IMG/VR virus record: IMGVR_UViG_3300042566_001780
Coordinates: 1 to 64,000 of that record
Strand: one strand, 5' to 3'
Length of the DNA: 64,000 bases
Below, in pieces: positions 29 to 30,311 of this stretch (its first letter is position 1; each line of letters opens with the position of its first letter). The translations under genes were made by a program, and so were the position numbers. Under the pieces are notes generated by a model. It was given only the letters and a program-made list of their open reading frames with translations. It searched no databases and had not been told where the DNA came from.

Positions 29-105
29 TGGCATATAGCTCAGTTGGTAGTAGCAAGTGACTGTTAATCACTAGGTCCCTGGTTCGAGCCCAGGTATGCC
101 AGCCA
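29..105 (+). tRNA. trnN: tRNA-Asn(GTT)
   Basis: Acceptor TGGCATA/TATGCCA, D arm, anticodon arm AGTGA-CTGTTAA-TCACT, T loop TTCGAGC, G73 and encoded CCA. Confidence 0.95.
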
Positions 106-133
106 GTTTTAAACTTTTTGAAGAACTTCAAAA

Positions 134-337
134 ATGCTCAAAGATCGAAAAGCCCTTCTTGAAGATGAAATCAGGAAGAATCACAAGAAAGCCGCAGACC
201 TCTATCTCATGATGGTCTCTGGTACAAAGAAAACTGTTGAAGATCACTCAGAAGAGTATGAACTTTTGAAAGCTAAACTGACTGATCTTCGATTTGAATT
301 GAATTTAGTTGATTCCCTGATTTCTCAAGGCAATTAA
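134..337 (+). CDS. Small hypothetical coiled-coil protein (67 aa)
   Basis: ATG ORF with upstream AGAAG between tRNA genes; helical, charged composition. Confidence 0.65.
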   Translation: MLKDRKALLEDEIRKNHKKAADLYLMMVSGTKKTVEDHSEEYELLKAKLTDLRFELNLVDSLISQGN

Positions 338-345
338 TAATTTTG

Positions 346-511
346 TGCCCGTGTAGTTGAGTGGTAAAAACAGACACTGAGTTGCAGCAATTCTAGACAT
401 GATGCAACAATGCTTTCATAACACGAAGGTAGTAGATCGGCCGGTTTGCTATCTGATTATGAGAGTGTAAAGGTGGAAGGTCGTGGGTTCGAGTCCCTCC
501 ATGGGTAGCCA
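346..511 (+). ncRNA. tRNA-like RNA with ~85-nt structured insertion replacing the anticodon loop
   Basis: Acceptor (T)GCCCGTG/CATGGGT(A), D arm GTT-GAGTGGTAAA-AAC, stem ACACT(374-378)/AGTGT(464-468), T arm GTGGG-TTCGAGT-CCCTC, terminal GCCA; internal 12-bp hairpin 427-454. Confidence 0.75.
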
Positions 512-652
512 TATCAAAGTGTTCATTGTTAGGTTCCTCTGATTATCCTAAGGTGTCATCAGAGCAGGGTCCTTGGAATTACAAGGAAGAAGAATGAGGA
601 AACTCATTTGGAAGGCAAGTGCAAATCCCCCTGGTGAATTCTTTGATATGGT
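508..652 (+). ncRNA. Putative multi-branched structured RNA between tRNA genes
   Basis: 12-bp closing stem GCCATATCAAAG/CTTTGATATGGT; hairpins 537-564, 570-587 and 593-608 (GAAA tetraloop); no ORF. Confidence 0.55.
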
Positions 653-660
653 TTAAAGAT

Positions 661-737
661 GCCGTTGTGATGGAATTGGTATACGTGTCTGATTCAAAAT
701 CAGAATTCTGTGGGTTCGAGTCCCACCAGCGGCACCA
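661..737 (+). tRNA. trnL: tRNA-Leu(CAA), short variable arm
   Basis: GCCGTTG/CAGCGGC acceptor, TCTGA-TTCAAAA-TCAGA anticodon arm, 5-nt variable loop, A73, CCA. Confidence 0.9.
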
Positions 738-742
738 TCAGT

Positions 743-836
743 TTTCCAAAACACATAGTCTCGCCGTTAGGCTAGCATGACGGATTATTGTTAGAGACCT
801 TGCATGATTAGACTTGAGTGCAATGTGTTTTGGGAA
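743..836 (+). ncRNA. Putative pseudoknotted small RNA
   Basis: 14-bp closing stem 743-756/823-836; GTCTC/GAGAC; hairpin 764-783 whose loop CTAGCA can pair with TGTTAG 789-794. Confidence 0.55.
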
Positions 837-847
837 TTATAGTTTTT

Positions 848-924
848 CTGCCCTTGGCGCAACTGAATAGCGCAACTGCCTTCTAAGCAGTAGGTTGTGG
901 GTTTGACTCCCGCAGGGCAGGCCA
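848..924 (+). tRNA. trnR: tRNA-Arg(TCT)
   Basis: CTGCCCT/AGGGCAG acceptor, ACTGC-CTTCTAA-GCAGT anticodon arm, CCA; T loop TTTGACT and D loop lacking GG are non-canonical. Confidence 0.88.
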
Positions 925-946
925 TTCATTTTTAATCAACCAAAAA

Positions 947-957
947 TGTGATACAAT
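947..957 (+). promoter_or_regulatory. Early-type extended -10 promoter TGTGATACAAT
   Basis: Matches the recurring motif; upstream of the 1008/1214 gene pair. Confidence 0.5.
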
Positions 958-969
958 CAATCTATGGAA

Positions 970-977
970 CTAAATAG
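970..977 (+). promoter_or_regulatory. Putative late promoter CTAAATAG
   Basis: Same 8-mer found upstream of many structural genes in this window. Confidence 0.55.
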
Positions 978-1007
978 CTTATTGTTATACCACTAACTTT
1001 TTGAAGG

Positions 1008-1217
1008 TTGAATATGAATTTGATGAATGAAGTTCTTCAAGTCTCTTTGATTGAAGAAGACATCCAAGAAAACGGCGCTGGCTTCAAAGCTGAGGACCTC
1101 CGCCAAGTTATTCAGTGTGTTACTACACTGAATGAGCAACAGCTCTCTGAGCCTCTTGAAGCTGATGACTTCCTTGCTCAAATGCGCAAAGAAGGTCTTT
1201 TGCCTGGAGGTGAATGA
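1008..1217 (+). CDS. Putative acidic antitoxin (69 aa)
   Basis: Small acidic ORF coupled by an ATGA overlap to the downstream RelE/YafQ-like gene. Confidence 0.55.
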   Translation: MNMNLMNEVLQVSLIEEDIQENGAGFKAEDLRQVIQCVTTLNEQQLSEPLEADDFLAQMRKEGLLPGGE

Positions 1218-1630
1218 AAATGGCAAAAGCAAGTAACGCCCCAGCAAAGAAGGTCGTTTTTCAAAGAACAGGTTTGTTCAATGACACCTTCGCAAACTAT
1301 GCAAATAATGCTACTGTGACAGCTAAGTTTGAGGATTTCATTGCCTTCAAGCGTCAGAATCCTCTTTTGCCTTATGGTAGCAAAGACGAACATTTCAAGG
1401 GCAATGGTCCCTTAGGTCAATCTAAAGTTATTCACGTTCACTTAACGCATAACGTCAATTTAATCTATAGTCGTGCCGGCAGTAATCCTATGACTATCAC
1501 TTTAATTTGGATTGGCGTTCATGATGAAATGGGCACAGGGCAACCACCAAATGCAAAGTTGCAAAAGAATGCTGCAGCAAAATTCTTAGCTGCTAAACCA
1601 GAAGGAAAAGTTTTTGAAAATGGAAAATGA
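1214..1630 (+). CDS. RelE/YafQ-like ribosome-dependent mRNA interferase
   Basis: Pattern PYGSKDEHFKG...IHVHL..NVNLIY...ITLIWIGVHDEM resembles YafQ KDHxLxG...CHI..D.LLIY...TGSH. Confidence 0.7.
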   Translation: MKMAKASNAPAKKVVFQRTGLFNDTFANYANNATVTAKFEDFIAFKRQNPLLPYGSKDEHFKGNGPLGQSKVIHVHLTHNVNLIYSRAGSNPMTITLIWIGVHDEMGTGQPPNAKLQKNAAAKFLAAKPEGKVFENGK

Positions 1631-1711
1631 TGTAAGATGGTCTCTTACGACTGCCTGCTAAGCAGTTCGTCCAGTCAAATGGATTCGGTTCGATCCCGAC
1701 GTTTTCCGCCA
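1622..1711 (+). tRNA. trnS: tRNA-Ser(GCT) with 8/4 acceptor/T-stem architecture
   Basis: 8-bp acceptor GGAAAATG/CGTTTTCC, 4-bp T stem TCGG/CCGA, 5-bp D stem GTAAG/CTTAC, anticodon GCT, long variable arm TCCA/TGGA, G73, CCA. Confidence 0.85.
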
Positions 1712-1728
1712 TAATAAGGAACTAGAAA

Positions 1729-2403
1729 ATGAAAAAAGTTATTGAGATTAGGCCTGCTGAAGGCGGTGAAGATTCTAAGTTGTTTGTCAGTGATCTGGCA
1801 AACGCATATGTGAAGTTGTCCATGAAAAAGGGCTGAAAGCACCAGCTGTCAGATTGTGATTCTTACACAACAATCACAATTACTGGTCACGATTTGACAG
1901 CTCTATCTCAAGAAGCCGGTGGTCACAGAATTCAGCGAGTACCGCCAACTGAAAGAAAATGTCGGGTACACACATCAACTGTTACTGTAGCAGTTCTAGA
2001 TGGTGATTCTTTAGTTGGCACAATTGCACTAGATCAAAAAGATCTCAAGCTTGAATGGTATTCTGGTACTGGATGTGGTGGCCAAAATCGTAATAAGGTG
2101 ATGGCTTCTTGTAGATTGACGCACGTTCCAACAGGAATTGTGAAAACGTCCCAAACAAGAAGCCGCGAAACTTCTTATGCTCAAGCATTGACTGCATTAA
2201 CTCAAGCAGTCAATGAAGGTTTGACAAAATCAAAGTTGAGCCAATTCAATCAAATTCGTAAGAATCAGGTTGGAAGTGGCGAACGCGGTGATAAAATAAG
2301 AACTTATCGATTTCAAGATGATTCAGTAAAAGATCATCGCACAAACAAAAGTGCTTCTGTTGCAAAAGTAATGAATGGTCATTTTGACCTTCTTTGGAAA
2401 TAA
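1729..2403 (+). CDS. RF1-type peptide chain release factor homolog lacking domain 1, with in-frame TGA at 1834-1836
   Basis: ATG 1729 with AAGGA RBS gives MKKVIEIRPAEGGEDSKLF..., in frame with GHRIQRVPPTE (PxT), GTGCGGQNRNK (GGQ) and GERGDKIRTYRF; the TGA occupies the conserved Trp position of RF1 (xxGW). Confidence 0.88.
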
Positions 2404-2405
2404 TA

Positions 2406-2678
2406 ATGGCTAAGTTGAATGCACGACAAATTGGTGAATTGGAAGCTCGGCAATTCTTGGGTGATGATGTTTGGAAGGCTTACAAAACTGATTATGATCA
2501 GTTGATGGCTTTTCGCAAAACACTTAAGGGAAAACCGACTGAAGAACAGAAAATCATTTTGGCTGCTAATAATGCGTTCATTGATTTTTATGGGAGCATT
2601 TTGTTCCATTCTGCAAGGTTGGCTTCTAGTGGAAAATGTGACTGCACGCGTTGCGGAAAGATTCGCAACGCTAAATAA
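2406..2678 (+). CDS. Hypothetical protein with C-terminal CxCxxC cluster
   Basis: ATG directly after the RF stop; ends ...KCDCTRCGK. Confidence 0.6.
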   Translation: MAKLNARQIGELEARQFLGDDVWKAYKTDYDQLMAFRKTLKGKPTEEQKIILAANNAFIDFYGSILFHSARLASSGKCDCTRCGKIRNAK

Positions 2679-2714
2679 TCTTAGTGCTATCACTATTCTC
2701 AAAGAAAGATTCTT

Positions 2715-3089
2715 ATGAAACTCGAAAACCTCGTTATTGACAAAAAGCCTGATACAAAAGCAGCTACTACTTCTGCTCCAGAGGAAACTCCGGGTGGTGC
2801 CACTGTGATGATCTTGAATGATCCTATCACTCCAGCAGAAGTTGTAGTTGAAGCTATCATGCATGGTACTGGATTGTCGAAACAGGCTGCTATGAAGCGC
2901 ATGATGCGTGCTCATCGTAATGGTTGGGTGCCTATTGCTTCTTATGCTACTAAAGACATTGCTGAAACGATTGCAAACAAAATCGAGCAACACGCTCGAA
3001 ACAATCCGAACTATGACCACTATCGTCCATTTGTTCGTCATAACGGACCTTGGCCGCTAGCTGTTGAAGTAATGGATGCTGAACAATGA
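2715..3089 (+). CDS. clpS: ClpS-like Clp protease adaptor
   Basis: VMILNDPITPAEVVVEAI...MMRAHRNG...YATKDIAETI matches the ClpS core. Confidence 0.85.
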   Translation: MKLENLVIDKKPDTKAATTSAPEETPGGATVMILNDPITPAEVVVEAIMHGTGLSKQAAMKRMMRAHRNGWVPIASYATKDIAETIANKIEQHARNNPNYDHYRPFVRHNGPWPLAVEVMDAEQ

Positions 3090-3095
3090 AATGAT

Positions 3096-3172
3096 GCACC
3101 GATGACGGAGCGGTCTAACGTCTACGCCTGCAAAGCGTGTGTTCCCAGGTTCAAATCCTGGTCGGTGCTCCA
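3096..3172 (+). tRNA. trnC: tRNA-Cys(GCA)
   Basis: GCACCGA/TCGGTGC acceptor, anticodon GCA, U73 discriminator, CCA. Confidence 0.95.
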
Positions 3173-3658: not shown

Positions 3659-5788
3659 ATGAACAAGCTCTCCATTGCATTTGCAAACAATCTCGCCATC
3701 ATTCCGACCCATGATAATGGCGATACCAAAAATACCGCTCTTGCAATGAGTGTTCAAGCTGAACTAATGAATGTCGGCTTCATGTTGAGCAAAGAAGCTT
3801 TCTCTTATCTTGAGACACGCACTGAGTCTTTCATTGCATCCTTCCATAACGGTATCATTCCTCTTGCAAAATCCGCAAAGGGCGTCACTAGCAAGAAGTA
3901 TTCTCCACTTTGGAAGAACTTCCCAATTGATGTTATGGCTGCATCTGATGCAGAGCTCTACATCACTGCGCTTATCCATTACTGGACTAATGGTACTTGG
4001 TCACCAGACGCGGAGCTGAAGGCTCGCGGTTTTGCTTTTGAAAAGAAAAACTTTATTGAGCTAAAGCTTGCTCCTGAAAATTGGGAGCAAAGTCTTGTCA
4101 ATGATTTGGCGGCTTTCACCAAACCGCTTGATCCCACCAATCTAAATAACCTGGTGTGGCTTGCGCAGAACTGTCAAGTCACCATTCCGGAAGTTTCTGT
4201 CAAAGAAACTATGGCAGCTTTGGCTGTAGCTGGAATTCCAGTGAAGGTGAAATCTCCTGTTGATGTGCTGCGGATTGCAGTCGGCATGTCTGGTGGCGAT
4301 ATGGCTCTCCCTTCTATGCCAAAAATCCCGCAAATGAAGGATAAGAGCTTGATGCGTGGCAGCTACGCATTTAATGCAAAAGTACAAGAAGCTAATGCGT
4401 TGCGTGAAACTTTCAAATTCAAGAAGTTCACTCGAAGCGAACGCCGGTACATCCTTGGATTGCTTGAGTCGCTGAAATTTGTTGATGAAGCAGAAATGCA
4501 GCGTCATCTTGGCCGTTGGGTTCGTCTTGGCGAAGTTCTCCATCCAGGCGAAATGAAGAGCAAGTTTCCAAAAGCAGCAGCTGCATTCTCCAAGATTCGC
4601 AATCAAGAAGAAGTGAAGGTTCGTACCTTTGCTGGTCGTGTTGATCTGGCGTTCAAGCAATCTCCTGATGTTGGTATGCAAGTTCTTCAAGAACGTCCTG
4701 GTGAATTTGCACGTCGTCTTGATGCACTGGTTCGTAATGAAAAGCATGATGCACAGCAGGTGATTGATCGATTTGCAGAAGTTGCAGGCAAAGTGTCGAC
4801 TAAAGTGCTGTTCGAGATGTTTGATCATTTTGAAGGTCGCTTGAAGGACAAGCCGCGTATGGTCATGATCAAGGGTAAAGGTTCCAAGGTTAAGAATCTG
4901 GAAACTCTCCCGAAACTGCCAGATCATATTGTGGAAAATATCCAGAAGATGATCAAGCAACAATTGGCTAATCGCGCTGCAAAGTTGCCAGCAATGGGTA
5001 ATGTGTTTGTTGATGATCAACTGCTGAATATGCCGGTGCCATATTCTATGCAATCCTCTGCAGAGGGTACTTCTACTTTGGTTCGCGGTACTCGCATGCC
5101 AATTGTTGAAGGTGCCAATACACTGCGTGGGTTTGTTCACTGGTATGATGAGAATGGCGATGACGACATTGATTTGTCGGCTACGTTCCTGGGCGCAAAG
5201 TTTGAAATTCTTGGTGAATGTGCATTCTATGATCTGCGGTCCACGAATTTGAAGGCGTATCACTCTGGTGATGTTCGCCATCGTATTGGGCATAATGCAG
5301 AGTACATTGACTTTGATTTGAATTCTGCTAAGGAACATGGTGTCAAGTATGTGGTGTTCTCTGCATACAATTTCAATGGTAATGCCATTAAGTCTGTACC
5401 TGAATGCACCTTTGGCGTGATGGAGCGTTCTAAGCCAAAAAGCAATGAGATCTTTGACCCAGCTACTGCCCCACAAGCTATCAAAGTTCAGGCAAATAGC
5501 AATTCGGTGTTTCCTGTCATGATTGATGTGGAAGCACATGAATGGATTTGGTTGGATCTTGAATCTGAAGGTCGAGGCTTTGCTTCTTTCCATAGTAATT
5601 CTTCTACTCTTGACAAAATCAAGGCATTCACACAACAAGCAAAGTTCAGTGTCTATGATCTGATTTCTCTGCATGTTGGCAGTCGCTCTGGTACCATTGT
5701 GAACAAGATGGAAGATGCTGATCTCATCTATTCGTATGACGACATTGTTCGAAACTATTCGAAACTGACTGAGTTCTTGAACATCTAA
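3659..5788 (+). CDS. ROT/TROVE-like helical protein fused to C-terminal TerD domain (709 aa)
   Basis: Helical N-region with RPGEFARRLDALVR; C-terminal TerD-like segment (W...DDIDLSATF...HSGDVR...AEYIDFDL...YVVFSAYNF); architecture recalled for the Prok-RING_4-associated family, but no RING finger here. Confidence 0.65.
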   Translation: MNKLSIAFANNLAIIPTHDNGDTKNTALAMSVQAELMNVGFMLSKEAFSYLETRTESFIASFHNGIIPLAKSAKGVTSKKYSPLWKNFPIDVMAASDAELYITALIHYWTNGTWSPDAELKARGFAFEKKNFIELKLAPENWEQSLVNDLAAFTKPLDPTNLNNLVWLAQNCQVTIPEVSVKETMAALAVAGIPVKVKSPVDVLRIAVGMSGGDMALPSMPKIPQMKDKSLMRGSYAFNAKVQEANALRETFKFKKFTRSERRYILGLLESLKFVDEAEMQRHLGRWVRLGEVLHPGEMKSKFPKAAAAFSKIRNQEEVKVRTFAGRVDLAFKQSPDVGMQVLQERPGEFARRLDALVRNEKHDAQQVIDRFAEVAGKVSTKVLFEMFDHFEGRLKDKPRMVMIKGKGSKVKNLETLPKLPDHIVENIQKMIKQQLANRAAKLPAMGNVFVDDQLLNMPVPYSMQSSAEGTSTLVRGTRMPIVEGANTLRGFVHWYDENGDDDIDLSATFLGAKFEILGECAFYDLRSTNLKAYHSGDVRHRIGHNAEYIDFDLNSAKEHGVKYVVFSAYNFNGNAIKSVPECTFGVMERSKPKSNEIFDPATAPQAIKVQANSNSVFPVMIDVEAHEWIWLDLESEGRGFASFHSNSSTLDKIKAFTQQAKFSVYDLISLHVGSRSGTIVNKMEDADLIYSYDDIVRNYSKLTEFLNI

Positions 5789-6488: not shown

Positions 6489-8459
6489 TCACTCTGCTAT
6501 AGTTGAGAACCCATGTTCTTTCTGCACTATGAGTTTCTTATCAAGTCTACCATCAATTAGTGGATGATGCGAAATAACATAGATTGATAGGGCTTCATCA
6601 CGACTCTTATTCTTCAAAATGCCAGTGATTGCATCAATACCACCAGGATCTAATTGACCATCAAGCTCATCAATCAACAAAATGTTGAATTGATTGTGCA
6701 ATCGGTGCAACACATCCCTAAAAGCTAAAGATAGAGCAGTATTTACCCGGCGTTTTTCGCCAGCAGACAAATTACCAAAGTCAAGTTCTCTACCATATTC
6801 AGAAACGGTGCAACTCATGTCGGCATCAAACTTGACGATATGGGGAAGACCAAGAGATGATGTGTAAAAGTTGATTCGGTCATTCAAAAATGGAACAGAG
6901 CGGTTAATAATTCTTTTTCGAATAAAAGAATCTTTACCAGTCAGTAACTTTAGCAAAAATTGTTGGTGATCAAGGCGCTTTTTGAGAGCATCAACCTTAG
7001 CTGTATCAATCACAACCTCATCTTCTAGCATAAGTTGCTCAAGAGTCGAGACATACGGATTTTCAGTTGATGCAAGATCCTCAATCCGCTGTTTGGAGAT
7101 GGCAGCATTCTGCCGTGCTTTCAACAAAATCTCAAGATTAGGCTTAGTGATTTTTGCCTTGACATCTTTCAACTTTTCTTGAAGAACAGCAAGATCAGAA
7201 TTAGATGCAGCTAATTCTGTATTCTTTAAATCAAGAGCAGTATTGTTCTCGATTAAAGATGTCTTAAGTGCTTCAAGTTTGTCTTTTGCTTCTGCATAAT
7301 CTTGCAAACAATAAGGACATTTGGCATCTTCCAAATGAGCAATATCATCCTGCTGCTTTTTGATTGTTTTCTGTAGATTGCTAATTGCTAACTTGATAGG
7401 TGTCAGTTTTGCATTTTGATTAGAAATTTGCAAAGTCAGTTGATCGCGTTCAGCATGCAGTAATTGTTCAGCTTCAAGATCATCAGATGATACTAAATCA
7501 AGTTCAGCTTGAAGCTTCTTGATTTCTGTATCTCGATTAGTTTCCCAGTTCAAAGCACGTTTTTCTGCATCATTGATGTGCTTTTTCTGTGTATCACGAG
7601 CTTGTTGTTGTTGAACAATAATTGCTTCTTGAACTTTAATATCACCTTCAGTTTGCTTTATAAGCTCTTTTAGCTTTACTGCTTTTTCTGAAAGAAGGGT
7701 GATGTTAAGCAGCTCTTCAATATGAAGTCGTTGCTGAGCAATAGGCAGTGCTAAGAATGCCTGAGAATTACCAGAGAAGATGACCGTTTTGGTAAACAGT
7801 TCAAAAGAAATTCCAATGATGTCTTGGATAAAATTGTCGCACTCAGTAACACCTTTGCCTGGTGTAATATCATCACCATTCTTTGTGATTGAGATTGAAT
7901 ATGATTCTCCACGAGAGCGAATGATTTCATATTCATCCAATCCTTTAGTGAAAGAAATACCAACCTGCATCAACGTGTTTTTTGTAGCATTTGTGCTATT
8001 GATAAGTCGTTGAAGACTAATGTTATCGAATGGCTTGTTGAATAGGACATAGCAGAGTGCATTAATGATAGTAGTGTTGTGAGATACTATATCGTTAGTA
8101 TAGTATCGATGATCATCAGAATCTACCTGAACATCGTACATATTTTCAAATCGATCAGTTTGAATAATCGACTTGATTTCACTATCACCAGCCCGTGTTT
8201 TTATTTTGTTGCCAACTTTAAGGTTCTTGACAAAAATTTCGTTGAAACTTTCATCAAACACAATGTGATCATCAGCACACTCAAGAGTAAATCCATCCCC
8301 AGTTTCAAGAATGAAAACTTGATACTGGATAGTCTTAACTACTTTTGAAATAGGTTGAAAACCACTATCAGTCTCAATCTCAAAATTTGAAACATCAAAG
8401 CTTTCAAGAATTTTTCGACTGACTATTTCTGAAGGTTTAAACAATTGGTTATGATTCAT
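6489..8459 (-). CDS. gp46: Rad50/SbcC/gp46 ATPase, C-terminal fragment with 128-aa N-terminal split-intein C-half
   Basis: Intein blocks LECADDHIVF and MYDVQV...YYTNDIVSHN|T; then TTIINAL, coiled coil, Zn hook CPYC, signature LSAGEK, Walker B LLIDELD. Confidence 0.9.
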   Translation of the reverse strand: MNHNQLFKPSEIVSRKILESFDVSNFEIETDSGFQPISKVVKTIQYQVFILETGDGFTLECADDHIVFDESFNEIFVKNLKVGNKIKTRAGDSEIKSIIQTDRFENMYDVQVDSDDHRYYTNDIVSHNTTIINALCYVLFNKPFDNISLQRLINSTNATKNTLMQVGISFTKGLDEYEIIRSRGESYSISITKNGDDITPGKGVTECDNFIQDIIGISFELFTKTVIFSGNSQAFLALPIAQQRLHIEELLNITLLSEKAVKLKELIKQTEGDIKVQEAIIVQQQQARDTQKKHINDAEKRALNWETNRDTEIKKLQAELDLVSSDDLEAEQLLHAERDQLTLQISNQNAKLTPIKLAISNLQKTIKKQQDDIAHLEDAKCPYCLQDYAEAKDKLEALKTSLIENNTALDLKNTELAASNSDLAVLQEKLKDVKAKITKPNLEILLKARQNAAISKQRIEDLASTENPYVSTLEQLMLEDEVVIDTAKVDALKKRLDHQQFLLKLLTGKDSFIRKRIINRSVPFLNDRINFYTSSLGLPHIVKFDADMSCTVSEYGRELDFGNLSAGEKRRVNTALSLAFRDVLHRLHNQFNILLIDELDGQLDPGGIDAITGILKNKSRDEALSIYVISHHPLIDGRLDKKLIVQKEHGFSTIAE

Positions 8460-8710
8460 TTTTGCTTTGCAATCATTTCATGAAATTCACCAATTTTCAT
8501 AGTGAATAATTCTTTAGTAGTTTTATCTCTGATAGTGATCATTACGTCATGTGTGACACATTTGCCGGATCCATTAGAGCCTCCAGTATCGAGGTTTTTA
8601 CCCTCAACCAATATAGTGCTTGGTTGAGATAAATCAATTTCATTTACATTTTGACCAAAGCTTAAAAAGTTACTAAACCAAAGTTTGTTGAATGTAATAT
8701 CATTACTCAT
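8456..8710 (-). CDS. gp46: Rad50/SbcC/gp46 N-terminal fragment (50 aa) plus 34-aa split-intein N-half
   Basis: MSNDITFNKLWFSNFLSFG...GGSNGSGK (Walker A) followed directly by C-VTHDVMITIRD (intein block A); ATG at 8710 preferred over 8761. Confidence 0.88.
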   Translation of the reverse strand: MSNDITFNKLWFSNFLSFGQNVNEIDLSQPSTILVEGKNLDTGGSNGSGKCVTHDVMITIRDKTTKELFTMKIGEFHEMIAKQK

Positions 8711-9083
8711 CTTTGGAAACATCCTTAGAAAAAGCAAATTGGACATCACTAGTGACATCAACCTCGCTAACTACTTTGTTGATGTATTTCCAGGTGCCCC
8801 AAACATATAATGCATCTGAGTTATTTCCAGGTTCTCCAGCAAATTCGTAGCATCGTCCAGAAGAAGTAAAAATCTTCTGTGAGGTTAGATCAATAGATTT
8901 GATAGCAGAAGAAACTCGCCCCTGATAAAACCGCGGTTCATAGCCAATTACGTGTCGAGTTTTTGTCCCATCAGCATAAGAAGCTTCCATAATTTTCCAT
9001 TGGGTCAATACTACTTCAGGCTGGTCTTCAATAGATTCAACATTCCATACTGATGAAGCTAAAATTTCGTTAATCATTTTCAT
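8703..9083 (-). CDS. Conserved hypothetical protein inserted between gp47 and gp46
   Basis: ORF overlaps both neighbours; motifs GRVSSAI, TSSGRCY, PGNNSDALYVW. Confidence 0.7.
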   Translation of the reverse strand: MKMINEILASSVWNVESIEDQPEVVLTQWKIMEASYADGTKTRHVIGYEPRFYQGRVSSAIKSIDLTSQKIFTSSGRCYEFAGEPGNNSDALYVWGTWKYINKVVSEVDVTSDVQFAFSKDVSKDE

Positions 9084-10120
9084 TTCCTTTCATCAAACAA
9101 TTCGTCAAAAATAGTAACTAAAGTATTTGGGTCAATTGTGGCCGTAGGAGTAACGCCGTCCTTGATTAATTGACGAACAGTATTATCAAGTTGATCAAGA
9201 GCATCATCCTCAACTTCAAGTCCTTCAGATATTGCTTGCTTTTGATTAACTGCATCCTGTTCAATAACAAACTCTCTCAATTGATACGCTTCAATCATTT
9301 CTGCTTTAAGAGCCTGAACATCAGTATAACCAATATCAATATCAAGTAGACATTTGACGCGAGAACCAGGTTTAAAGTCTGCATTTTCTGCAGCTAATAC
9401 ATGTGATAACCGAGTCTTGTAGAATAATGGGCACTTAGGATAATCATAGAAAATGATGTCTTCAGATTCAGTGTCTAACATAGCAGCACCGCGCTCTGAA
9501 TCACCAGCATCCCCATAGTTTGTTGGGAATGCATTTCCAATGTAAACTACATTACCAGAAAACTGGCGCTTATGAAAATGCCCAGATAAAATGTATCGAG
9601 GACCCGTAAATTGCTTAGCATCTGGACCATGATCAAGAACTTTATCCTGACCAGTCACAACAAAGTTTCTAAATTCAAAATGGCCTAGCACATATTTGTA
9701 AGAGTTAATTTTGGCTGCAAGCTCTGGATACTCTGGATGAAACAAATAAGGAGCAGCATACATCTCTTTATTAATTTCTTGTGGTTCTGATATGATCCTG
9801 AAATTTTTGAAATCAGAAAATGGATCGGTTGAAAAAATATTTCGATTAGATCTGTAAAAAAGATCATGGTTACCAACTATAAAGAAAACTGGCAACCCAA
9901 GATTATCAAGTTTTCTTGCAGCAGCATGGGAAGAATTTAGAGTTCTAACACTGATTTGGTTTCGATTCTCATACCAATCACCCAAAAAAGCAATGTGAGT
10001 AGCTTTTTCGCGAATAGCTAGATCGCAGAACCAATCAATGAACTCATGACAGTCATTCAGATGTTGTTCTGAGTTGAGTCTTGCACCAAAATGAATGTCA
10101 GTAAAGCAAAGTAATTTCAT
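9080..10120 (-). CDS. gp47: Mre11/SbcD/gp47 recombination nuclease
   Basis: Metallophosphoesterase motifs TDIHFG, LGDWY, VGNHD, SGHFH; adjacent to gp46. Confidence 0.92.
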   Translation of the reverse strand: MKLLCFTDIHFGARLNSEQHLNDCHEFIDWFCDLAIREKATHIAFLGDWYENRNQISVRTLNSSHAAARKLDNLGLPVFFIVGNHDLFYRSNRNIFSTDPFSDFKNFRIISEPQEINKEMYAAPYLFHPEYPELAAKINSYKYVLGHFEFRNFVVTGQDKVLDHGPDAKQFTGPRYILSGHFHKRQFSGNVVYIGNAFPTNYGDAGDSERGAAMLDTESEDIIFYDYPKCPLFYKTRLSHVLAAENADFKPGSRVKCLLDIDIGYTDVQALKAEMIEAYQLREFVIEQDAVNQKQAISEGLEVEDDALDQLDNTVRQLIKDGVTPTATIDPNTLVTIFDELFDERK

Positions 10121-10192: not shown

Positions 10193-10654
10193 TTAGTCTT
10201 CTTTGAAGGACATGAATGAATGGTCGTCTGAAGACTTAGATTGATAGTTAAAGGATGGATTTGCTCCGGCATCCATCAGTAACTCATCACGAATGTCTCG
10301 TTCCTTGCGTTCTGCATTGATATAACCTAAGAATGAACGATAAACTGAGGTTGTATAATATGAAAATGGATTAGGAGATTCGGATTTGGTATGATCAAAT
10401 TTATGCCAATTATTGACCAAATTAACTACGGCAGTTGCTACCATGTCTTCGCGAAATGAATAACCTGCAAACCATGGATGGTAGGAATATCGTTCTGCAA
10501 TCAGAACCAAATATTGGCCTAAACGATCTGTAAGAACGCCTTTTTCTTTTGCCTCTAAAAATGCTTCTAAAATTTGAGCATTAGATACGTAATGCTTTTT
10601 ACTATCTGTTGATTTTTCTTTTTTGTATTTTTTCTTTGGTTCTGTTGCTGCCAT
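10193..10654 (-). CDS. gp55: gp55-like late-transcription sigma factor
   Basis: HYVSN...LIAERYS...GYSFREDM...NPFSYYT...INAERKE; T4-like synteny 55-47-46. Confidence 0.88.
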   Translation of the reverse strand: MAATEPKKKYKKEKSTDSKKHYVSNAQILEAFLEAKEKGVLTDRLGQYLVLIAERYSYHPWFAGYSFREDMVATAVVNLVNNWHKFDHTKSESPNPFSYYTTSVYRSFLGYINAERKERDIRDELLMDAGANPSFNYQSKSSDDHSFMSFKED

Positions 10655-10767
10655 AGAATCCTCTATTAGGTTGTTGGACAGCAGTGTATATTTTAACCTA
10701 ATAACCTCAAATTATTTAATTGGTTTTAGGATGAAATGCTGCTGTTTTGTGCAATAGTCATTTGTAG

Positions 10768-10775
10768 CTAAATAG
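10768..10775 (+). promoter_or_regulatory. Putative late promoter CTAAATAG
   Basis: Start of the rightward structural operon. Confidence 0.7.
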
Positions 10776-10809
10776 TTAAGTCACATTCTTATTGATAGAA
10801 TTCCTAATC

Positions 10810-11430: not shown

Positions 11431-12904
11431 TAAATTATTCGATTTACCAAAAATTGCTTCCTCTGTAAGTCAGGAAGTCACAAGCAAAATAGGAGAAGCT
11501 GCATCAAAAGTTAGTTCTTCTTTAGCTACTTCTGCATTAAACAAAATTGCTAGCGGGGTGCCATCATTTACTGAGCTTGCATCAAGCAATATTCTCGGAA
11601 AAGCTGTATCACCAGTTTTGAGCGAATTATCTGCTAATCTTGGATCTGCAGCATCAGCTTTAGGTGGTCTGGGAACAGGACTTGGTAATTTAGCAAATAA
11701 TCCGTTTGGATTAGATGCAGCATTTGGAGATGCTACAACATCCTTATCTGCGTCTGCATTGCGAGAAACTGTAGGTGAGCCGGCAGATTCTGCAGTAGAT
11801 GAAACTCATAAGGTCAAGCTAATATCTATAGTTGATAATAACTCGGTATATTTTGAAAATATGCCACAAATTCAAGAAACTAGAAGAGCTGAATATGAAG
11901 CTCTTCAACCGCCTCAAATGCCTGGTGAATTCCAAAAATACAAAGGCACAAAGAGCGTTCAATGGACTATTACTGCAACACTAACAGCAGCAACTGTATT
12001 TGAAGCATCTGTCAATCGAGATTATGTGAATTTGCTCAGAACGTGGACATATCCGTATTTCGGTGATGCTCAGCAAGGAACTGGCCGGCTTGGAGCACCA
12101 CCACCAGTAATCTTATTTTCTGGCTGGAGAAACTTAGTTGGAGAAGTGCCAACAGTCATAACAGATTTGAACTGGACTTGGCCAAAAGATGTTGATTGGA
12201 TACCTACTGACTACATAGATCAGTATAGCGGAATGCCGGTACCATTTCCAGCTGTTATTGAAGTGACTATAACTTTAGTTGAATCATTTAGTGCAAATCA
12301 ATTGAATAGTATCAACTTAATAGATTATAGAGATGGAAATATGGTTGGGGCATTTGCGATTCCGGCAAATCAACCAGAAAATTCAGGTGAGCTTTCTAGC
12401 AGCATTGAACCTGATGTTGAAAGTATGATGGCAGAAAGTGAAGCGATGATTGCTGAAATGAGCGCTGTTCCAGAAATTGATATTCCAAATATTGAAGCCT
12501 TGAATCCATTGCCTAATCTTTCTGCAGATGAAATAACAGCTACTATCCCTGAATTAGATGGCGCAGATAGTATGCCAACTTTAAGTGATTTAGGTGACTC
12601 TGATTTTATTGCTCCTTCAGAATTTAACGATCCACCAATTAGTAACTTAGCTGCTGATACAGATGACGTTAATGTAGATGAAGTATTAACAGAAGCATCA
12701 TCCGGGACAATTGAAGAAACTGCAGAAGATATGTCAGTTTTTGCTGCAGCTAGTGCATCATTTAATTTGAATCAATCGACATATTTTGGCGTAGCCTCAA
12801 ACCAATTGACATACACTGGCGATGATCCAATAGTATGGGACAATGTTAATACTGAAAGACTTCGTCGTGGTCTATCAGGATTGCCTAATACTAGACCCGT
12901 ATGA
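11423..12904 (+). CDS. Baseplate/tail-tube initiator-like protein (gp48/54-like)
   Basis: Core FENMPQIQE...PGEFQKYKGT...WTITATL...APPPVILFSGW; position upstream of the LysM and hub genes. Confidence 0.55.
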   Translation: MFDKLFDLPKIASSVSQEVTSKIGEAASKVSSSLATSALNKIASGVPSFTELASSNILGKAVSPVLSELSANLGSAASALGGLGTGLGNLANNPFGLDAAFGDATTSLSASALRETVGEPADSAVDETHKVKLISIVDNNSVYFENMPQIQETRRAEYEALQPPQMPGEFQKYKGTKSVQWTITATLTAATVFEASVNRDYVNLLRTWTYPYFGDAQQGTGRLGAPPPVILFSGWRNLVGEVPTVITDLNWTWPKDVDWIPTDYIDQYSGMPVPFPAVIEVTITLVESFSANQLNSINLIDYRDGNMVGAFAIPANQPENSGELSSSIEPDVESMMAESEAMIAEMSAVPEIDIPNIEALNPLPNLSADEITATIPELDGADSMPTLSDLGDSDFIAPSEFNDPPISNLAADTDDVNVDEVLTEASSGTIEETAEDMSVFAAASASFNLNQSTYFGVASNQLTYTGDDPIVWDNVNTERLRRGLSGLPNTRPV

Positions 12905-15414: not shown

Positions 15415-16521
15415 ATGTTAATGGAAGGCTTTGTGGTAGATACCAATGATCCACAACAAATGGGTCGCGTTAAGGTATGGGTGCCATCAATCGATGGAGA
15501 CAAATACCAAATTAAAAATCTGCCATGGGCTACGTTTGTATCTCCCTTAGCAGGTCAATTAAGAAATTATCCTTCTGGCCCAAATGCATCAGTATCAAAG
15601 GGGCTAGCATCTTATGGATGGTGGGCAATACCAAAAGAAGGATCTCTTGTCATTGTTGGATTACTCTACAATGACCAAAATAGACGCGTTTATATGGGAT
15701 CTTTTTTCCGTGATCATGGAAATAGATCTTTGCCTGCAGGTAGAATGCGGCCAGATATTGGCGATGTGCCATTAACTGATACATTTGATCCTTTAGAACC
15801 CGCAAGTACTAACCTTAAAGATCAATTTAACGGTAAGTTGTCTGCAAGTGAAGCCAAGACCCGCGGAGCAGTTGAGCGTCCAGTAGCGCAAGACAAAACT
15901 GAAAAAGACGGTACTAATGGATACCATGGAGATTTATTAAACCCAAAGGATTATGATAGCAAACCAGCATTTGACCCGCAAACTGTATCATTAACCACTC
16001 CGGGACATCACACTATTGTTTTCCAAGATAACCCTGAAAATGGTCGTGTCCGAATTAAAACAGCTGCCGGACATCAAATTATTTTAGATGATGCCAATGA
16101 GCGAATTTATGTCTCAACTGCAAAGGGCAAAAACTGGATTGAATTTGATCAGGATGGCCGTGTCCATTTATATGCCGAGCAGGATATAAGCATTGCTACA
16201 GCTGCATCAATGAACATCACTGTTGGAAAAGATTTTAAGCTTAATGCTGGTGGATCGGTCAATATCCAAGCAGGATCATCAATGAACTTGGCTTCTTGTA
16301 AAGATATGAATGTTGCTGGCACTGGTGTAAATCTTCAGTCGACAGCAGATTTCAATATCTTAGCTTCATCAAATTTACTGCAAACTGCTAGCAACATTCA
16401 TTTGAATGGTCCATCTGCAAAAAGTGCAGTATGTCCAGTTGTACCATCCGTGGTACCGCAACATGAGCCATGGGTTAGGGAGGCATCAAAGTCAGCCCGT
16501 AATAAGAATTGGAAAGCATGA
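15415..16521 (+). CDS. gp5: gp5/VgrG-like central spike (OB fold plus beta-helix, no lysozyme domain)
   Basis: GFVVDTNDPQQMGRVKVWVP, WWAIPKEGS, GHQIILDD, beta-helix repeats. Confidence 0.85.
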   Translation: MLMEGFVVDTNDPQQMGRVKVWVPSIDGDKYQIKNLPWATFVSPLAGQLRNYPSGPNASVSKGLASYGWWAIPKEGSLVIVGLLYNDQNRRVYMGSFFRDHGNRSLPAGRMRPDIGDVPLTDTFDPLEPASTNLKDQFNGKLSASEAKTRGAVERPVAQDKTEKDGTNGYHGDLLNPKDYDSKPAFDPQTVSLTTPGHHTIVFQDNPENGRVRIKTAAGHQIILDDANERIYVSTAKGKNWIEFDQDGRVHLYAEQDISIATAASMNITVGKDFKLNAGGSVNIQAGSSMNLASCKDMNVAGTGVNLQSTADFNILASSNLLQTASNIHLNGPSAKSAVCPVVPSVVPQHEPWVREASKSARNKNWKA

Positions 16522-17213: not shown

Positions 17214-20200
17214 ATGGCATTCAGAAATACTCCCGACGCAGAAAGCTGGTCAAAAATATATGAAGCTTTTTCGCAAATAAATTTCACTTCATATGACTAT
17301 GATACTATCAAAGCCTCATTGATAGATTATCTCAGGATCTATTGGCCAGAATCTTTCAATGATTTAATTGAGTCATCGGAGCTCATTGCATTATTAGAAA
17401 TGTTTGCGTATGTAGCAGAGCAATTGGCTTATAGGGTTGACATGGTATCCCATGAAAACTTTATTTCTACTGCTCAGCGAAAACAATCCATTTTGAGACT
17501 GGCCAAGTTGATTTCATACAAGTCAACTCGTAATGTACCAGTTCGTGGATTAGTGAAATTCACTAGCATTACCACTACAGAAAGAATTATTGACAGTCGC
17601 GGCGTTGATTTATCTGGATTAACTGTTAATTGGAATGACCCAAATAATAGCAATTGGAAAGAACAATTTACTACGATCATTAACCGTGTGATGACGAGTC
17701 GACTCGGGCTACCACAAAAGAGCTTTCAAGTCGGTGATGTAGTAATGGATCTATACTCGTTGAATGCTACACCGGCTTCAACAAAAAATGGAGTTCATGC
17801 TTTTTCTGTGCAGACTGGTTTAGATCGCTATTCAATGGAGTTAGTACCAGTTGATTTAGATGTCAATGGACCATATGAACGAGAGCCGGATGTCAATGGA
17901 AATATGTCCATTATTTTTGCAAATGATGGTATTGGTGATAGTTCAGAATACACTGGATTTCTAGGATACGTTAAGCAAGGTACATTAATTCGTATTGATT
18001 ACGCAATTAATGATCAATTACCTAATCGTAAAATCGATTTCTTGCCAGACAACATCAACCATACCGACGTTTGGGTGCAAAAGCTTGATACTAATGGAGT
18101 TGTTGCTGAAAGATGGAAACAAGTTGATACGATATCTGAGCAAAATATCATTTTTAACGGTGACAAGTCAACTCGATTAAAATACGAAGTTGATTCACTC
18201 GAAAATGATCAAATATCAATTGTGTTTGGCGACGGTGATTTTGCTGAAAGCCCAGTTGGCCAATTTAGATTCTGGATGCGCCAATCAGCAAACAGAAACG
18301 TAGTAATTCCAAAAAGCAAACTGGTCAATGAAACATTTAGTTTTACTTATGTTTCTGCTAATGGCACCACTGAGACATGCACGCTTACATTTAGCTTGAC
18401 ATCAACAATGCAGAATGGTTCTGCATCTGAGACAATAGAACACATTCGCCAATCTGCTCCATCCACTTACTATTCCCAAAACCGAATGGTTAATGGTCAG
18501 GACTATAACACATACATGTTGAAGGATCCTTCAATCCTTAGATTGAAGACTATCAATAGAACGTTTGCGGGACAACCAAAATACATTGATTGGAATGATG
18601 CATCTGGAAGCTACGAAAACGTAAAATTGTTTGGCGATGATTTATCAATGCGATATGATTTGAGTCTAAATTCTTTGACTACCACAGTTAGTGGTCAGGC
18701 TTTGATTGATAATGTCATAGAGCCGTTATTGAATGATTCTGGTATTATTACGGCATTAACATATTTGTCAGCTACACATCCTGCTACAACCGGCGTCATA
18801 TCTTCCCCTCGCCGTACTTTCATAGAAGATAATCGTGCGGGCTTACACTATTCAACAGCCAATTCGTTGATTTCATTAATTGCTGGTTCTACTGGCGATG
18901 GATCATTGAAAGAGAAAACTGCTATTCAGGGTCTAATTGATAGACATTGGTATGGAGAGCCCCTCGAGTACATTAAAGGCGATGGTTTACAAGTATGGGC
19001 CAAGATACCAGATCCTGCTCTTAATCCAAAAGATGATTCAAAAATCTATGCAGCTACCGTTCCAAGAACAATTGATGGCATCAATAAGTATCCTCCAGGT
19101 GATGTTGGTTCTGGATTTCAGCCAATTGCCGAGCAGGATTATTTTGCATTAAAATATCATCGCACATCTTTAGGAATTGGTACTGGATCTATTGTTGTCC
19201 ACAATAGGCCAACTGCTGGAAGTGACTTCGACGGAGAAGTTTGGACTATTGAAATAGGTGCAGATTCAAAGACAATTTATGTTCGCTCTTCATTGCGCGG
19301 AACATTCCCGACAGGTGTTGTTGGTGAGGTTTATGAAATAACTCCTGCAGGTCAAATAGCCCCAATAGACTTTTTTACAATATCGCAATTACCAACGGAT
19401 ATCGTATTTGAGCCAGGCGATGCATTTATTTTAGATACCCCAACTAATGCAGCTCCGACTGTTAGAAATATTGCCCCGTATTTTAATACTAGCTCGGTGA
19501 TTAACTTAAATGGTTGGTGGGAATTACTTACTACCGGTGCTAATGACTTGGGTGCAGAATTTGCAAACGGTCCAACCAGTGCAGCTCCTTATTTCCATGA
19601 TCAAGTATATGATCCATTTGGCGATAGGAAGAATAGTTGGTTGATTTTTGTCAAGAAAATCAAGCAACAACCAACTAACGTTGTGATTGGTTATGAAGTA
19701 TTCTATAGAAGTTTGAAATTGCTCGTTGAATCCCCAACAACCAAATTTTGGTTCAATGAAGTAGATCAGATTCTTGACAGCGATACTAAGAAGAGAGTAT
19801 TTGATAACATTAAAGTTTTGCGGTCTAATAAAGACTGGGCAGGGAATGTTATTAAGAGCACTCAGCTTTATGACGTCATTGGAGCGGTGAAAAAATCCAC
19901 TGGCGAAAATGACATCAATAAATTGCACATAGTACCATCTGATTTATTACAAGAAGATACTAGTGGAAATCTTGAGCCAGATCGTTTATTGCAATTTATC
20001 AATTTTGCTGGATTAAATGCCGCTGAAAGCTTTGAGTATTTTGATTTAGAGAATCAGGCCGTTATCCTTGCTGGCACTAGCAAATCGGCAGCTGTTAATG
20101 CTTTCAGCAGTAAAAGTATTTCCGCATTTGGTGTAGTTGCTTCATCTAATCCAGTTCAAGCTTATGGTCGCAGATTGTCTGCTGCAAATAGAACAGATGC

Positions 20201-20825
20201 TGCTGCAAAAGGTTTGGACTTTATGTGGCAACATTTTGCTCCTAATACTAACATAATTGATCCATCAGTAACAAATATCCATGATTGTTATATTTTGACT
20301 GAGGGATATTATTCTTCTGTGATTAATTTCGTTCGCGGAATAAGTTCAATTACGCCAATAGAACCAACATCACTTGACCTAAGAAATTCATATAGCTATT
20401 TGTTGAAAAACAAAATGTTAAGTGATACTTTGGTATTACATTCTGGTAAAATAAAGCTTTTATTTGGTGCTTTAGCTGAACCACAGCTAAGAGCAAAATT
20501 CAGAATAGTTAGATCACCAGGTTCAAGACTGACAAATGAAAAGATAAAAGAAGAATTGCTAAACGTAATTAATTCTTATTTTGAAATATCAAATTGGGAT
20601 TTTGGTGAAAGCTTCTATGCAACAGAATTGATTGCATTAATGCATCAAAAATTACCTACTGAAATTTCATCTGCTGTATTAGTGCCGTTGTACTCAACCA
20701 ATTCATTTGGAGATATGTTTACAGTTGATTGCGGTGAAAATGAGTTATTGCAATCGGCCGCAATGATATCTGATATTGAAATTGTTGATGCGCTAACTCC
20801 CACCACATTGAGACAAATCAAGTAG
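17214..20825 (+). CDS. gp6: Baseplate wedge protein gp6-like (1203 aa)
   Basis: YDYDTIKASLIDYL...DLIESSELIALLEMFAY...ILRLAKLISY; VFGDG; QNRMVNGQDY. Confidence 0.85.
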   Translation: MAFRNTPDAESWSKIYEAFSQINFTSYDYDTIKASLIDYLRIYWPESFNDLIESSELIALLEMFAYVAEQLAYRVDMVSHENFISTAQRKQSILRLAKLISYKSTRNVPVRGLVKFTSITTTERIIDSRGVDLSGLTVNWNDPNNSNWKEQFTTIINRVMTSRLGLPQKSFQVGDVVMDLYSLNATPASTKNGVHAFSVQTGLDRYSMELVPVDLDVNGPYEREPDVNGNMSIIFANDGIGDSSEYTGFLGYVKQGTLIRIDYAINDQLPNRKIDFLPDNINHTDVWVQKLDTNGVVAERWKQVDTISEQNIIFNGDKSTRLKYEVDSLENDQISIVFGDGDFAESPVGQFRFWMRQSANRNVVIPKSKLVNETFSFTYVSANGTTETCTLTFSLTSTMQNGSASETIEHIRQSAPSTYYSQNRMVNGQDYNTYMLKDPSILRLKTINRTFAGQPKYIDWNDASGSYENVKLFGDDLSMRYDLSLNSLTTTVSGQALIDNVIEPLLNDSGIITALTYLSATHPATTGVISSPRRTFIEDNRAGLHYSTANSLISLIAGSTGDGSLKEKTAIQGLIDRHWYGEPLEYIKGDGLQVWAKIPDPALNPKDDSKIYAATVPRTIDGINKYPPGDVGSGFQPIAEQDYFALKYHRTSLGIGTGSIVVHNRPTAGSDFDGEVWTIEIGADSKTIYVRSSLRGTFPTGVVGEVYEITPAGQIAPIDFFTISQLPTDIVFEPGDAFILDTPTNAAPTVRNIAPYFNTSSVINLNGWWELLTTGANDLGAEFANGPTSAAPYFHDQVYDPFGDRKNSWLIFVKKIKQQPTNVVIGYEVFYRSLKLLVESPTTKFWFNEVDQILDSDTKKRVFDNIKVLRSNKDWAGNVIKSTQLYDVIGAVKKSTGENDINKLHIVPSDLLQEDTSGNLEPDRLLQFINFAGLNAAESFEYFDLENQAVILAGTSKSAAVNAFSSKSISAFGVVASSNPVQAYGRRLSAANRTDAAAKGLDFMWQHFAPNTNIIDPSVTNIHDCYILTEGYYSSVINFVRGISSITPIEPTSLDLRNSYSYLLKNKMLSDTLVLHSGKIKLLFGALAEPQLRAKFRIVRSPGSRLTNEKIKEELLNVINSYFEISNWDFGESFYATELIALMHQKLPTEISSAVLVPLYSTNSFGDMFTVDCGENELLQSAAMISDIEIVDALTPTTLRQIK

Positions 20826-20865
20826 TTTTGAACCGGGGCGTCCCGGGACAGTTTGCGAAAATTCT

Positions 20866-20873
20866 CTAAATAG
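20866..20873 (+). promoter_or_regulatory. Putative late promoter CTAAATAG
   Basis: Upstream of the 3128-aa structural gene. Confidence 0.7.
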
Positions 20874-20913
20874 GCTTAATTGATCGTTATGTCCAATTTA
20901 GAGAATTTAAAAC

Positions 20914-30300: not shown

Positions 30301-30311
30301 CGAAATGAATT

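Follow-up and report, generated by a model that had tools for sequence, protein, structure and literature searches.

Why should a phage gene for gp46/Rad50 be interrupted within the very motif that its product would use to bind ATP? The question is raised by two genes within positions 1-64,000 of IMGVR_UViG_3300042566_001780, a record of 291,687 base pairs (bp) from a large phage. This stretch of 64,000 nucleotides (nt) is referred to here as the window. Gene 1 runs from 8710 to 8456 on the minus strand and encodes 84 amino acids (aa), of which 50 are the N-terminal part of gp46 (the N-extein) and 34 are assigned to an N-terminal intein fragment (IntN), followed by TGA. Gene 2, from 8459 to 6489 on the same strand, encodes 656 aa and opens with a 128-aa C-terminal intein fragment (IntC, MNHNQ to IVSHN), after which gp46 resumes with TTIINALCY. 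It is very probable that these are the halves of a naturally and atypically split class-1 intein, placed between the Lys and the Thr of the gp46 Walker A motif (GSNGSGK/TT, where the slash marks the insertion point). The two parts of gp46 would then be joined by trans-splicing, as far as the sequence allows this to be judged.

A sequence-only reading of the window had already proposed this gene structure. All of its elements are present on the minus strand at the positions given there, including the ATGA overlap, the 34-aa IntN and the 128-aa IntC. The reading was also correct that the window has neither an endonuclease domain nor an intervening gene at this point, the halves overlapping by 4 nt. 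The features are as follows.

8561..8710, minus strand: gp46/Rad50 N-extein (50 aa, MSNDITF...GSNGSGK), with the first half of the Walker A motif; from translation and PHROG_77
8459..8560, minus strand: IntN (34 aa, CVTHDV...EFHEMIAKQK), with beta1, beta2, alpha1 and a short tail; TGA stop at 8456-8458
8456..8459, minus strand: ATGA stop/start overlap of genes 1 and 2, adjoining the A5 run; gene 2 is in the -1 frame
8076..8459, minus strand: IntC (128 aa, MNHNQ...IVSHN), with block B His65, block F Asp109 and block G His127-Asn128
6489..8075, minus strand: gp46/Rad50 C-extein (528 aa from Thr+1, TTIINALCY...) and stop codon; from PHROG_77

The A5 run is a string of five As at 8459-8463 (T5 on the plus strand), and a sixth A would join both frames.

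Evidence for an intein in gp46

One line of evidence is similarity to inteins of known structure. Compared with the PDB as a single sequence, the window IntC matches CatC (E = 2.2e-5) and VidaL (2.3e-5), and PolB16 and gp41-1 are matched as well. Two alignments were then used, A1 with 86 IntC homologues and A2 with 21 IntN sequences. With a profile made from A1, VidaL is matched at 1.4e-13, gp41-1 at 1.6e-11 and CatC at 9.5e-9; the Spl DnaX and NrdJ-1 inteins come next. The NCBIfam model of intein C-termini, TIGR01443, scores 15.6 bits on the window, which is its cut-off, and 24.4 bits on the related locus L004. The comparison of hidden Markov models (HMMs) is therefore in line with the earlier reading, with TIGR01443 matched at its cut-off and solved inteins matched by the IntC profile at E = 1e-13 to 1e-9.

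Another clue is which residues are conserved. His65, Asp109, His127 and Asn128 are invariant among the 86 IntC sequences, and the invariant columns are the catalytic ones. Cys1 is the sole invariant column of the 21 IntN sequences. The window has the residues of a class 1 intein throughout. The first-residue nucleophile is Cys51 of gene 1, directly after GSNGSGK. Block B supplies His65, with Ala at the Thr position of TxxH (CADDH), as in the CAFNH of VidaL. Asp109 of block F, His127-Asn128 of block G and a +1 Thr complete the set, and 222 of 223 family members have T or S at the +1 position.

The predicted fold agrees. An AlphaFold (AF2) model of IntC has a predicted local distance difference test score (pLDDT) of 94.3. 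The best match of this model in the PDB by Foldseek is VidaL (E 8e-8, template modelling [TM] score 0.75, root mean square deviation [RMSD] 0.8 Å over 101 columns at 30% identity). The top 50 matches are mostly inteins, gp41-1, Mtu RecA and Npu DnaB among them, together with two intein-like BIL domains. The IntC model has the HINT fold, and P0134, a contiguous relative, is modelled as a complete horseshoe (pLDDT 96.5). Profiles, invariant catalytic residues and model together support the proposal of a Cys1/Thr+1 split intein inside the Walker A motif of gp46/Rad50.

The host protein can be identified from both sides of the insertion. Residues 2-50 of gene 1 align with positions 293-333 of PHROG_77, an SbcC-like profile (E 3.4e-6), and residues 129-656 of gene 2 align with positions 334-954 (E 5.9e-72). 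The exteins therefore abut at 333/334 and are consecutive to the residue. This match, and a gp47 gene with a Metallophos domain upstream, assign the host to the Rad50/SbcC/T4 gp46 ATPases. Pfam SMC_N is also found in gene 2 (3.9e-8), at 33.4 bits and thus below its cut-off of 40. A tblastn search with gene 2 matched 2786 phage records (gp46/SbcC), and in nearly all of the best 40 of these the match starts at residue 129. Chance would not account for the IntC profile matches, the consecutive extein positions and this common starting residue. A megablast search with the locus gave no match among 50,697 phage records.

Orthologues without an intein show what the joined protein should look like. 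In L021-L026, which are such orthologues, the N-terminus aligns with the N-extein of gene 1. Five of these (L021-L023, L025 and L026) have the motif GGSNG(S/A)GKTT(I/L)INA. In IMG/VR, the gp46 of the closest relatives by extein (53-62% identity) is uninterrupted and reads GSNGSGKTTIINA (GGSNG(S/A)GKTT(I/L)INA(L/I)CYALYNK). The intein thus occurs sporadically, and taking it out gives back the Walker A motif. The expectation that trans-splicing would rebuild GSGKTT is therefore upheld to the extent that this is the conserved Walker A motif of the intein-less orthologues and that the extein positions are consecutive.

Three phages with longer tblastn matches came up as candidates for contiguous gp46 inteins and were rejected. 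Xanthomonas phage XacN1 and Stenotrophomonas phage CM1 have intein-free Mre11-Rad50 (gp47-gp46) fusions or neighbours, and S-RIM32 has an ordinary, intein-free gp46 of 565 aa. Two of them are jumbo phages with an arrangement of their own. In XacN1 (L001, 1421-4720) Mre11/gp47 and Rad50/gp46 are fused into one protein of 1100 aa. In CM1 (L003) the N-terminal part of the gp47-gp46 fusion seems frameshifted in the deposited, unverified record.

The gene break and its rival explanations

Is the break between genes 1 and 2 real? Relatives of the window are informative here. Locus L031 comes from another sample and, although 213 of 2222 nt (9.6%) differ, shares the A5/ATGA junction of the window. 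L014, which is 94% identical in gene 1 (synonymous divergence, dS, about 0.4), reads GC-TAGCAAAAATG in place of GCAAAGCAAAAATG in the window. Its gene 1 ends in ...IASKNES, and because of the 1-nt indel gene 2 is read in the +1 frame instead of the -1 frame, the two genes overlapping by 11 nt. The L004-type lineage, to which protein P0002 belongs, is 75% identical in gene 1. It comprises 17 contigs from many samples, and its junction, gtgTAATGcgc, is free of homopolymers. The same linker is split in five further gp46 lineages, beyond the four junction types of the close lineage. L015 and L028, from more distant gp46 lineages, are split with a 3-nt spacer, in P0024 the C-half gene begins directly after the N-half gene, and in L017, L019, L029 and L030 a whole gene lies between the intein halves. 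The homologues, close and distant, therefore do keep the break that the sequence-only reading had described.

The proteins themselves give the same picture. IntC comes first in all 17-18 gp46 members sampled, and no contiguous gp46 intein is among the gp46 members recovered, even though such a form would have passed the searches. The tails of IntN and the heads of IntC differ from member to member in both length and sequence, the pattern to be expected if these ends are free. Between the window and L014, the ratio of nonsynonymous to synonymous substitution (dN/dS) is 0.053 for IntC, 0.119 for IntN and 0.035 for the C-extein. Since both genomes are split, these low values show purifying selection on the two halves, which have thus been kept in working order as separate parts. 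Judged by these sequence comparisons, the gene break is genuine and conserved and not a sequencing error.

The position of the break can be defined with the help of contiguous family members in TerL (P0097 and P0134, for example; ...RQxGK/C...), which align with the split members. The alignment has a conserved IntN core of ~29 residues that ends in ...GEFYxx, a linker of highly variable length and a conserved IntC start, S..(R/K)KF. The variable linker is the place where every split member ends and restarts. In the AlphaFold model of the P0134 intein, from which the secondary structure of the window IntN was assigned, strands at 7-12 and 18-22 are followed by a helix at 23-29. The least confident stretch of this model is the loop after the helix (residues 31-40, mean pLDDT 80). 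The window IntN ends four to five residues past the helix. Atypically split inteins in the literature have an IntN of 15-37 aa and a correspondingly long IntC. The break lies after helix alpha1 (the S2 position) in AceL TerL (25 aa) and GOS TerL (37 aa), and at the S1 position in VidaL (16 aa) and PolB16 (15 aa) (PMC13014065). On the modelled structure, the window intein is thus of the atypically split S2 type, with a 34-aa IntN, a 128-aa IntC and the break after alpha1.

What if the break were an artefact of assembly or sequencing? The true gene would then have six As and encode a contiguous 162-aa mini-intein that splices in cis. The junction does fall within a homopolymer (A5, 8459-8463) in which one more A fuses the frames, and contiguous members of the same intein family do occur in TerL (P0097, P0134). 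However, the junction is the same in L031, which is 9.6% diverged and from another sample, and the indel of L014 is a different one that yields the other wrong frame. The 75%-identical lineage has its homopolymer-free junction in 17 contigs, IntC comes first in every gp46 member sampled and the tails and heads behave like free termini. A miscounted A run, for which the sequence-only reading had allowed, has been discarded as the cause of the split, since diverged relatives keep it with four junction sequences and in both wrong frames, and an error deserves next to no credence. Alternatively, ribosomes might shift frame on the A run in a programmed manner (a -1 slip of tRNA-Lys on CAA AAA TGA), giving a single-chain precursor with a cis intein. 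As the sequence reads, a P-site tRNA-Lys that slips by -1 from AAA to AAA at the stop would bring ATG into the A site. In L014, where the A5 run is retained, a +1 slip could serve. However, this means that the direction of the slip would have to differ between two close relatives. In addition, nothing slippery is present at the L004-type junction (GTG TAA TGC), the stop is followed by a 3-nt spacer in L015 and L028, and the halves are separated by a whole gene in L017, L019, L029 and L030. Because slip directions differ, the slippery site can be absent and spacers or genes can intervene, the family must work in trans, and frameshifting is a highly improbable account of the window. Reassignment of the stop codon was also considered and rejected. 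If TGA were read as Trp, gene 1 would gain no more than 11 residues up to a TAG and would still not be in the frame of IntC. The L004-type genes, as their sequence reads, end in TAA. The open reading frames (ORFs) of the window read normally with code 11.

A different kind of doubt is whether the halves still splice. They might be a decayed or non-splicing remnant that holds the gp46 pieces together non-covalently, or gp46 might be a pseudogene. Phage proteins that are split without splicing are indeed known, the fractured SbcD-like and NrdA cases being examples (PMC2677866). Nevertheless, Cys1, His65, Asp109, His127, Asn128 and Thr+1 are all kept and are invariant or nearly so family-wide, and dN/dS is 0.05-0.12 in the intein halves and 0.035 in the extein. 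Moreover, from what is generally known of Walker A motifs, a P-loop cut between GK and T should be unable to bind nucleotide unless it is religated. A remnant is therefore very improbable.

The reading preferred here, a split intein that is active in trans, has difficulties of its own, and the following points weigh against it. The Pfam intein models gave no match to gene 1 or gene 2 at E <= 0.1, and the TIGR01443 score of the window only reaches the cut-off. Neither the sequence of gene 1 nor the IntN profile finds anything significant in the PDB (E = 1.3 for CatN), the best matches being chance similarity to a ribosomal protein, because IntN alone is too short. Block B carries Ala for the canonical Thr of TxxH, though VidaL has CA..H too. 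Many natural split inteins splice poorly when assayed (PMC11923092). Finally, the A5 run of the window and its closest relatives would allow occasional slippage to a fused precursor, and with it some cis-splicing.

Predicted splicing and known counterparts

Upstream of gene 1 are two further genes that bear on how the halves might be expressed.

8703..9083, minus strand: small ORF of 126 aa between gp47 and gene 1 (context)
9083..10120, minus strand: gp47/Mre11-like nuclease subunit, the partner of gp46; Pfam Metallophos 1.6e-10

The 126-aa ORF begins within the end of the gp47 gene, and its stop codon runs into the start of gene 1. With such overlaps of stop and start codons between neighbours, the four genes from gp47 through the small ORF to gene 2 are packed closely into a single unit. 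The small ORF has no match in Pfam or PHROG. An ORF of 124-129 aa is found at the same position in L004-L014 and L031, and the order gp47, small ORF, gp46 is kept in relatives.

These observations suggest the following sequence of events. The four genes would form one operon, and the overlapping stop and start codons may couple the expression of the two halves. The 34-aa IntN (beta1, beta2, alpha1) would dock on a largely pre-folded 128-aa IntC and complete the HINT fold, as the models and the homology to VidaL and Cat suggest. The conserved catalytic residues point to the usual chemistry. Cys1 would form a thioester, attack by Thr+1 would give a branched ester, Asn128 would cyclise with the aid of His127 and an O-to-N shift would follow. 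The predicted product is a gp46 of 578 aa with an intact P-loop, GSNGSGKTT, in which the joint reads ...GSNGSGK-TTIINALCYVLFNK. Before splicing, gp46 would be unable to bind ATP. In other words, ATP binding by the phage Mre11-Rad50 complex would have to await the meeting and splicing of two polypeptides, which would be a simple and testable dependence of recombination and end-processing. The further idea of the sequence-only reading, that splicing might serve as a control point for recombination-dependent replication, is a hypothesis for or against which the sequence comparisons do not speak.

How does this compare with known systems? Closest in layout are AceL TerL, GOS TerL and Cat (PDB 6DSL), which are likewise naturally split, come from phage-like metagenomic DNA, have the S2 split and lack an endonuclease domain. 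Their IntN is 25, 37 and 30 aa long, respectively, and their IntC 104-115 aa (PMC13014065, PMC11766414). AceL is of the Cys1/Cys+1 type and GOS of the Ser1/Cys+1 type, and Cat also has Cys+1 (PMC11766414), whereas the window intein has Thr+1 (Cys1/Thr+1) at Walker A GK/T. AceL and GOS reside in terminase, in contrast to gp46/Rad50. Furthermore, the window IntC is longer at 128 aa, with ~20 extra residues ahead of beta3, and is only about 24% identical to that of Cat in a structural alignment. With a remote CatC match (2.2e-5), E = 1.3 for CatN, Thr+1 and a gp46 host, the window intein falls outside the AceL/GOS TerL (Cat) subfamily. The resemblance to TerL-type inteins that the sequence-only reading had seen therefore holds for the short-N/long-C break at S2 and for general kinship but not for membership, and the nearest solved structure is VidaL.

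VidaL (PDB 6VGV/6VGW) is the best match by both profile and structure. It shares the CA..H of block B and the C-terminus HRYY..I(V/L)SHN, and it is atypically split and cysteine-dependent. However, in VidaL the split follows beta2 (S1) and leaves an IntN of 16 aa (PMC13014065), whereas in the window intein it follows alpha1, some 18 residues further on. For comparison, gp41-1, NrdJ-1 and IMPDH-1, which were characterised from the fractured-gene set, are split at the canonical position. A canonical split gives an IntN of about 100 aa and an IntC of about 40 aa (PMC11923092).

The fractured genes of Dassa et al. (2009) combine split inteins with free-standing Vsr-like or GIY-YIG endonucleases (PMC2677866). 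The window is similar in that a phage gene of DNA metabolism is broken in place by a split intein, and the same layout is seen in L017, L019, L029 and L030. It differs in having no intervening gene. The term gp46 and the term Rad50 each have 0 occurrences in that paper. The inteins surveyed by Novikova et al. (2016) in DnaB (site b), MCM (site a), RFC-S and terminase are also inserted in ATP-binding P-loops (PMC4760082), but they are mostly contiguous and often have endonuclease domains. Rad50/SbcC has 0 occurrences in that survey (PMC4760082).

No report of an intein in gp46, Rad50 or SbcC was found in the searchable literature, outside of which several key papers lie, so that this is absence of evidence only. 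Reviews name only AceL TerL, GOS TerL, VidaL and PolB16 as natural atypically split inteins (PMC13014065, PMC11766414). A natural S2-type atypically split phage intein is thus of a known kind, and gp46/Rad50 is a new host for it. Such short-N inteins are sought for protein semisynthesis and labelling. The window adds a Cys1/Thr+1 example with a 34-aa IntN, and its diverged natural homologues could feed consensus design or tests of orthogonality.

Endonuclease genes, family and neighbourhood

How might a gene come to be broken at this point? A clue comes from L017, L019, L029 and L030, in which an ORF of 366-387 aa lies between the N-half and the C-half and overlaps the C-half start. In this group the N-half is 67-89 aa long where complete, that of L030 being cut by the contig end. 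The intervening ORF matches homing endonuclease families of PHROG at 1.2e-6 and phrog_22677 at 8.6e-18. As a single sequence it has no match in the PDB. Its C-terminal motif, ...EYNGdFWH...GYeVLvIWE..., aligns with ...HGCFWH...GWRVLIVWE... of Vsr, at E about 0.9 only and with a profile of 4 sequences. The label Vsr-like is used because of the shared motif and of the findings of Dassa et al. (PMC2677866). These four loci have the fractured-gene layout, unlike the window.

The variable linker after alpha1 would therefore be the breaking point of the family, occupied in several gp46 relatives by a free-standing, apparently Vsr-like homing-endonuclease gene. The arrangement of the window is most simply the same element without, or after loss of, that gene, although the order of events is a reconstruction. 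The model of Dassa et al., in which a fractured gene loses its endonuclease, would account for it (PMC2677866). That some relatives have an endonuclease gene at the break and others do not bears on the origin of split inteins. Other endonuclease genes, of the SegE-type GIY-YIG or NUMOD3 kind, follow the gp46 loci of L019 (5295-6359), L028 (4296-4724) and L030 (3218-5653). Free-standing homing endonucleases are therefore plentiful around gp46, quite apart from the one interposed in the intein.

The size of the family was gauged by a HMMER scan with IntC over 1.84 billion representatives. At least 1039 clusters match at E <= 1e-3 and 548 at E <= 1e-10. In a sample of 225 family proteins, IntC starts within the first 15 residues of 183, which are hence split. 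The sample is biased to the query, and its host proportions should not be taken as a census. Sorted by C-extein, the hosts are:

Terminase large subunit: 125 proteins, 94 split
ClpX-like AAA_2 ATPases: 48 proteins, 48 split
gp46/SbcC: 17-18 proteins, all split
DnaB-like helicases: 12 proteins, 9 split
Other ATPases: a few proteins, most split

The family junction is always ...SHN followed by T or S, within the Walker A GK/T or GK/S of phage ATPases, and the P-loop is a recognised hot spot for inteins (PMC4760082). At least 17 gp46 clusters are among the sampled family, and public metagenomes already hold many siblings of the window intein. The novelty that the sequence-only reading had suspected stands, as far as the searchable literature goes, with respect to the host, gp46, but the element is not one of a kind, since it belongs to a very large, mostly split P-loop family.

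A tree of 105 IntC sequences has too few columns to resolve 60 of its 102 branches. The gp46 inteins are found at several places in it, and a single gp46 clade is not rejected (approximately unbiased [AU] test, p = 0.586). In some terminase-like proteins, P0082, P0087 and P0101 among others, the IntC query matches in two or three separate stretches, which suggests that such hosts may carry more than one related intein each. Within the window no further inteins were found, and its DnaB-like gene (48002-49348) is uninterrupted.

Perhaps the window intein represents a very large superfamily, hardly described in the searchable literature, that targets the Walker A GK/T or GK/S of unrelated phage ATPases (TerL, ClpX-like, gp46/Rad50, DnaB and others), mostly split after alpha1 at a break created when a free-standing Vsr-like homing-endonuclease gene invaded and was later lost. 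This wider proposal is tentative, and its chances are put at somewhat short of even. The window intein in any case gives a view of a large P-loop family to which current reviews still apply the word rare. If the wider proposal is true, atypically split inteins would be common and not rare. The contiguous, the fractured (with endonuclease gene) and the endonuclease-free overlapping forms would then be a natural series for the gene-breaking model, and the gp46 clade a pool of Cys1/Thr+1 tools with a short IntN.

Several minor observations concern the genes nearby. L004 and also L005 have an IS605 OrfB/TnpB (Cas12f-like) gene near the gp47-gp46 cluster (L004, 2664-3887). In L004 it is flanked by a cytidylyltransferase-like gene and by a 177-aa gene at the position of the sigma-like ORF of the window (10193-10654). 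There is no TnpB-like gene at the equivalent place of the window (10655-10791). At 11547-12255, within a few kb of its gp46, L004 also has genes for a ClpS-like protein and for a protein with the release-factor domains PCRF and RF-1.

In the window itself, an ORF of 709 aa on the plus strand (3659-5788) is antisense to one of 510 aa on the minus strand (4142-5674) over ~1.5 kb, which is an unusual length. Neither has a Pfam match, and the plus-strand ORF corresponds to a called gene of 716 aa in L004. Five tRNA genes (Asn-GTT, Leu-CAA, Arg-TCT, Ser-GCT and Cys-GCA) lie on the plus strand within ~3.1 kb at 29-3172. Also on the plus strand are three consecutive very large ORFs of 1203, 3128 and 2099 aa (17214-36611), downstream of a baseplate-hub-like gene at 15415-16521 (Phage_base_V, 4.5e-11).

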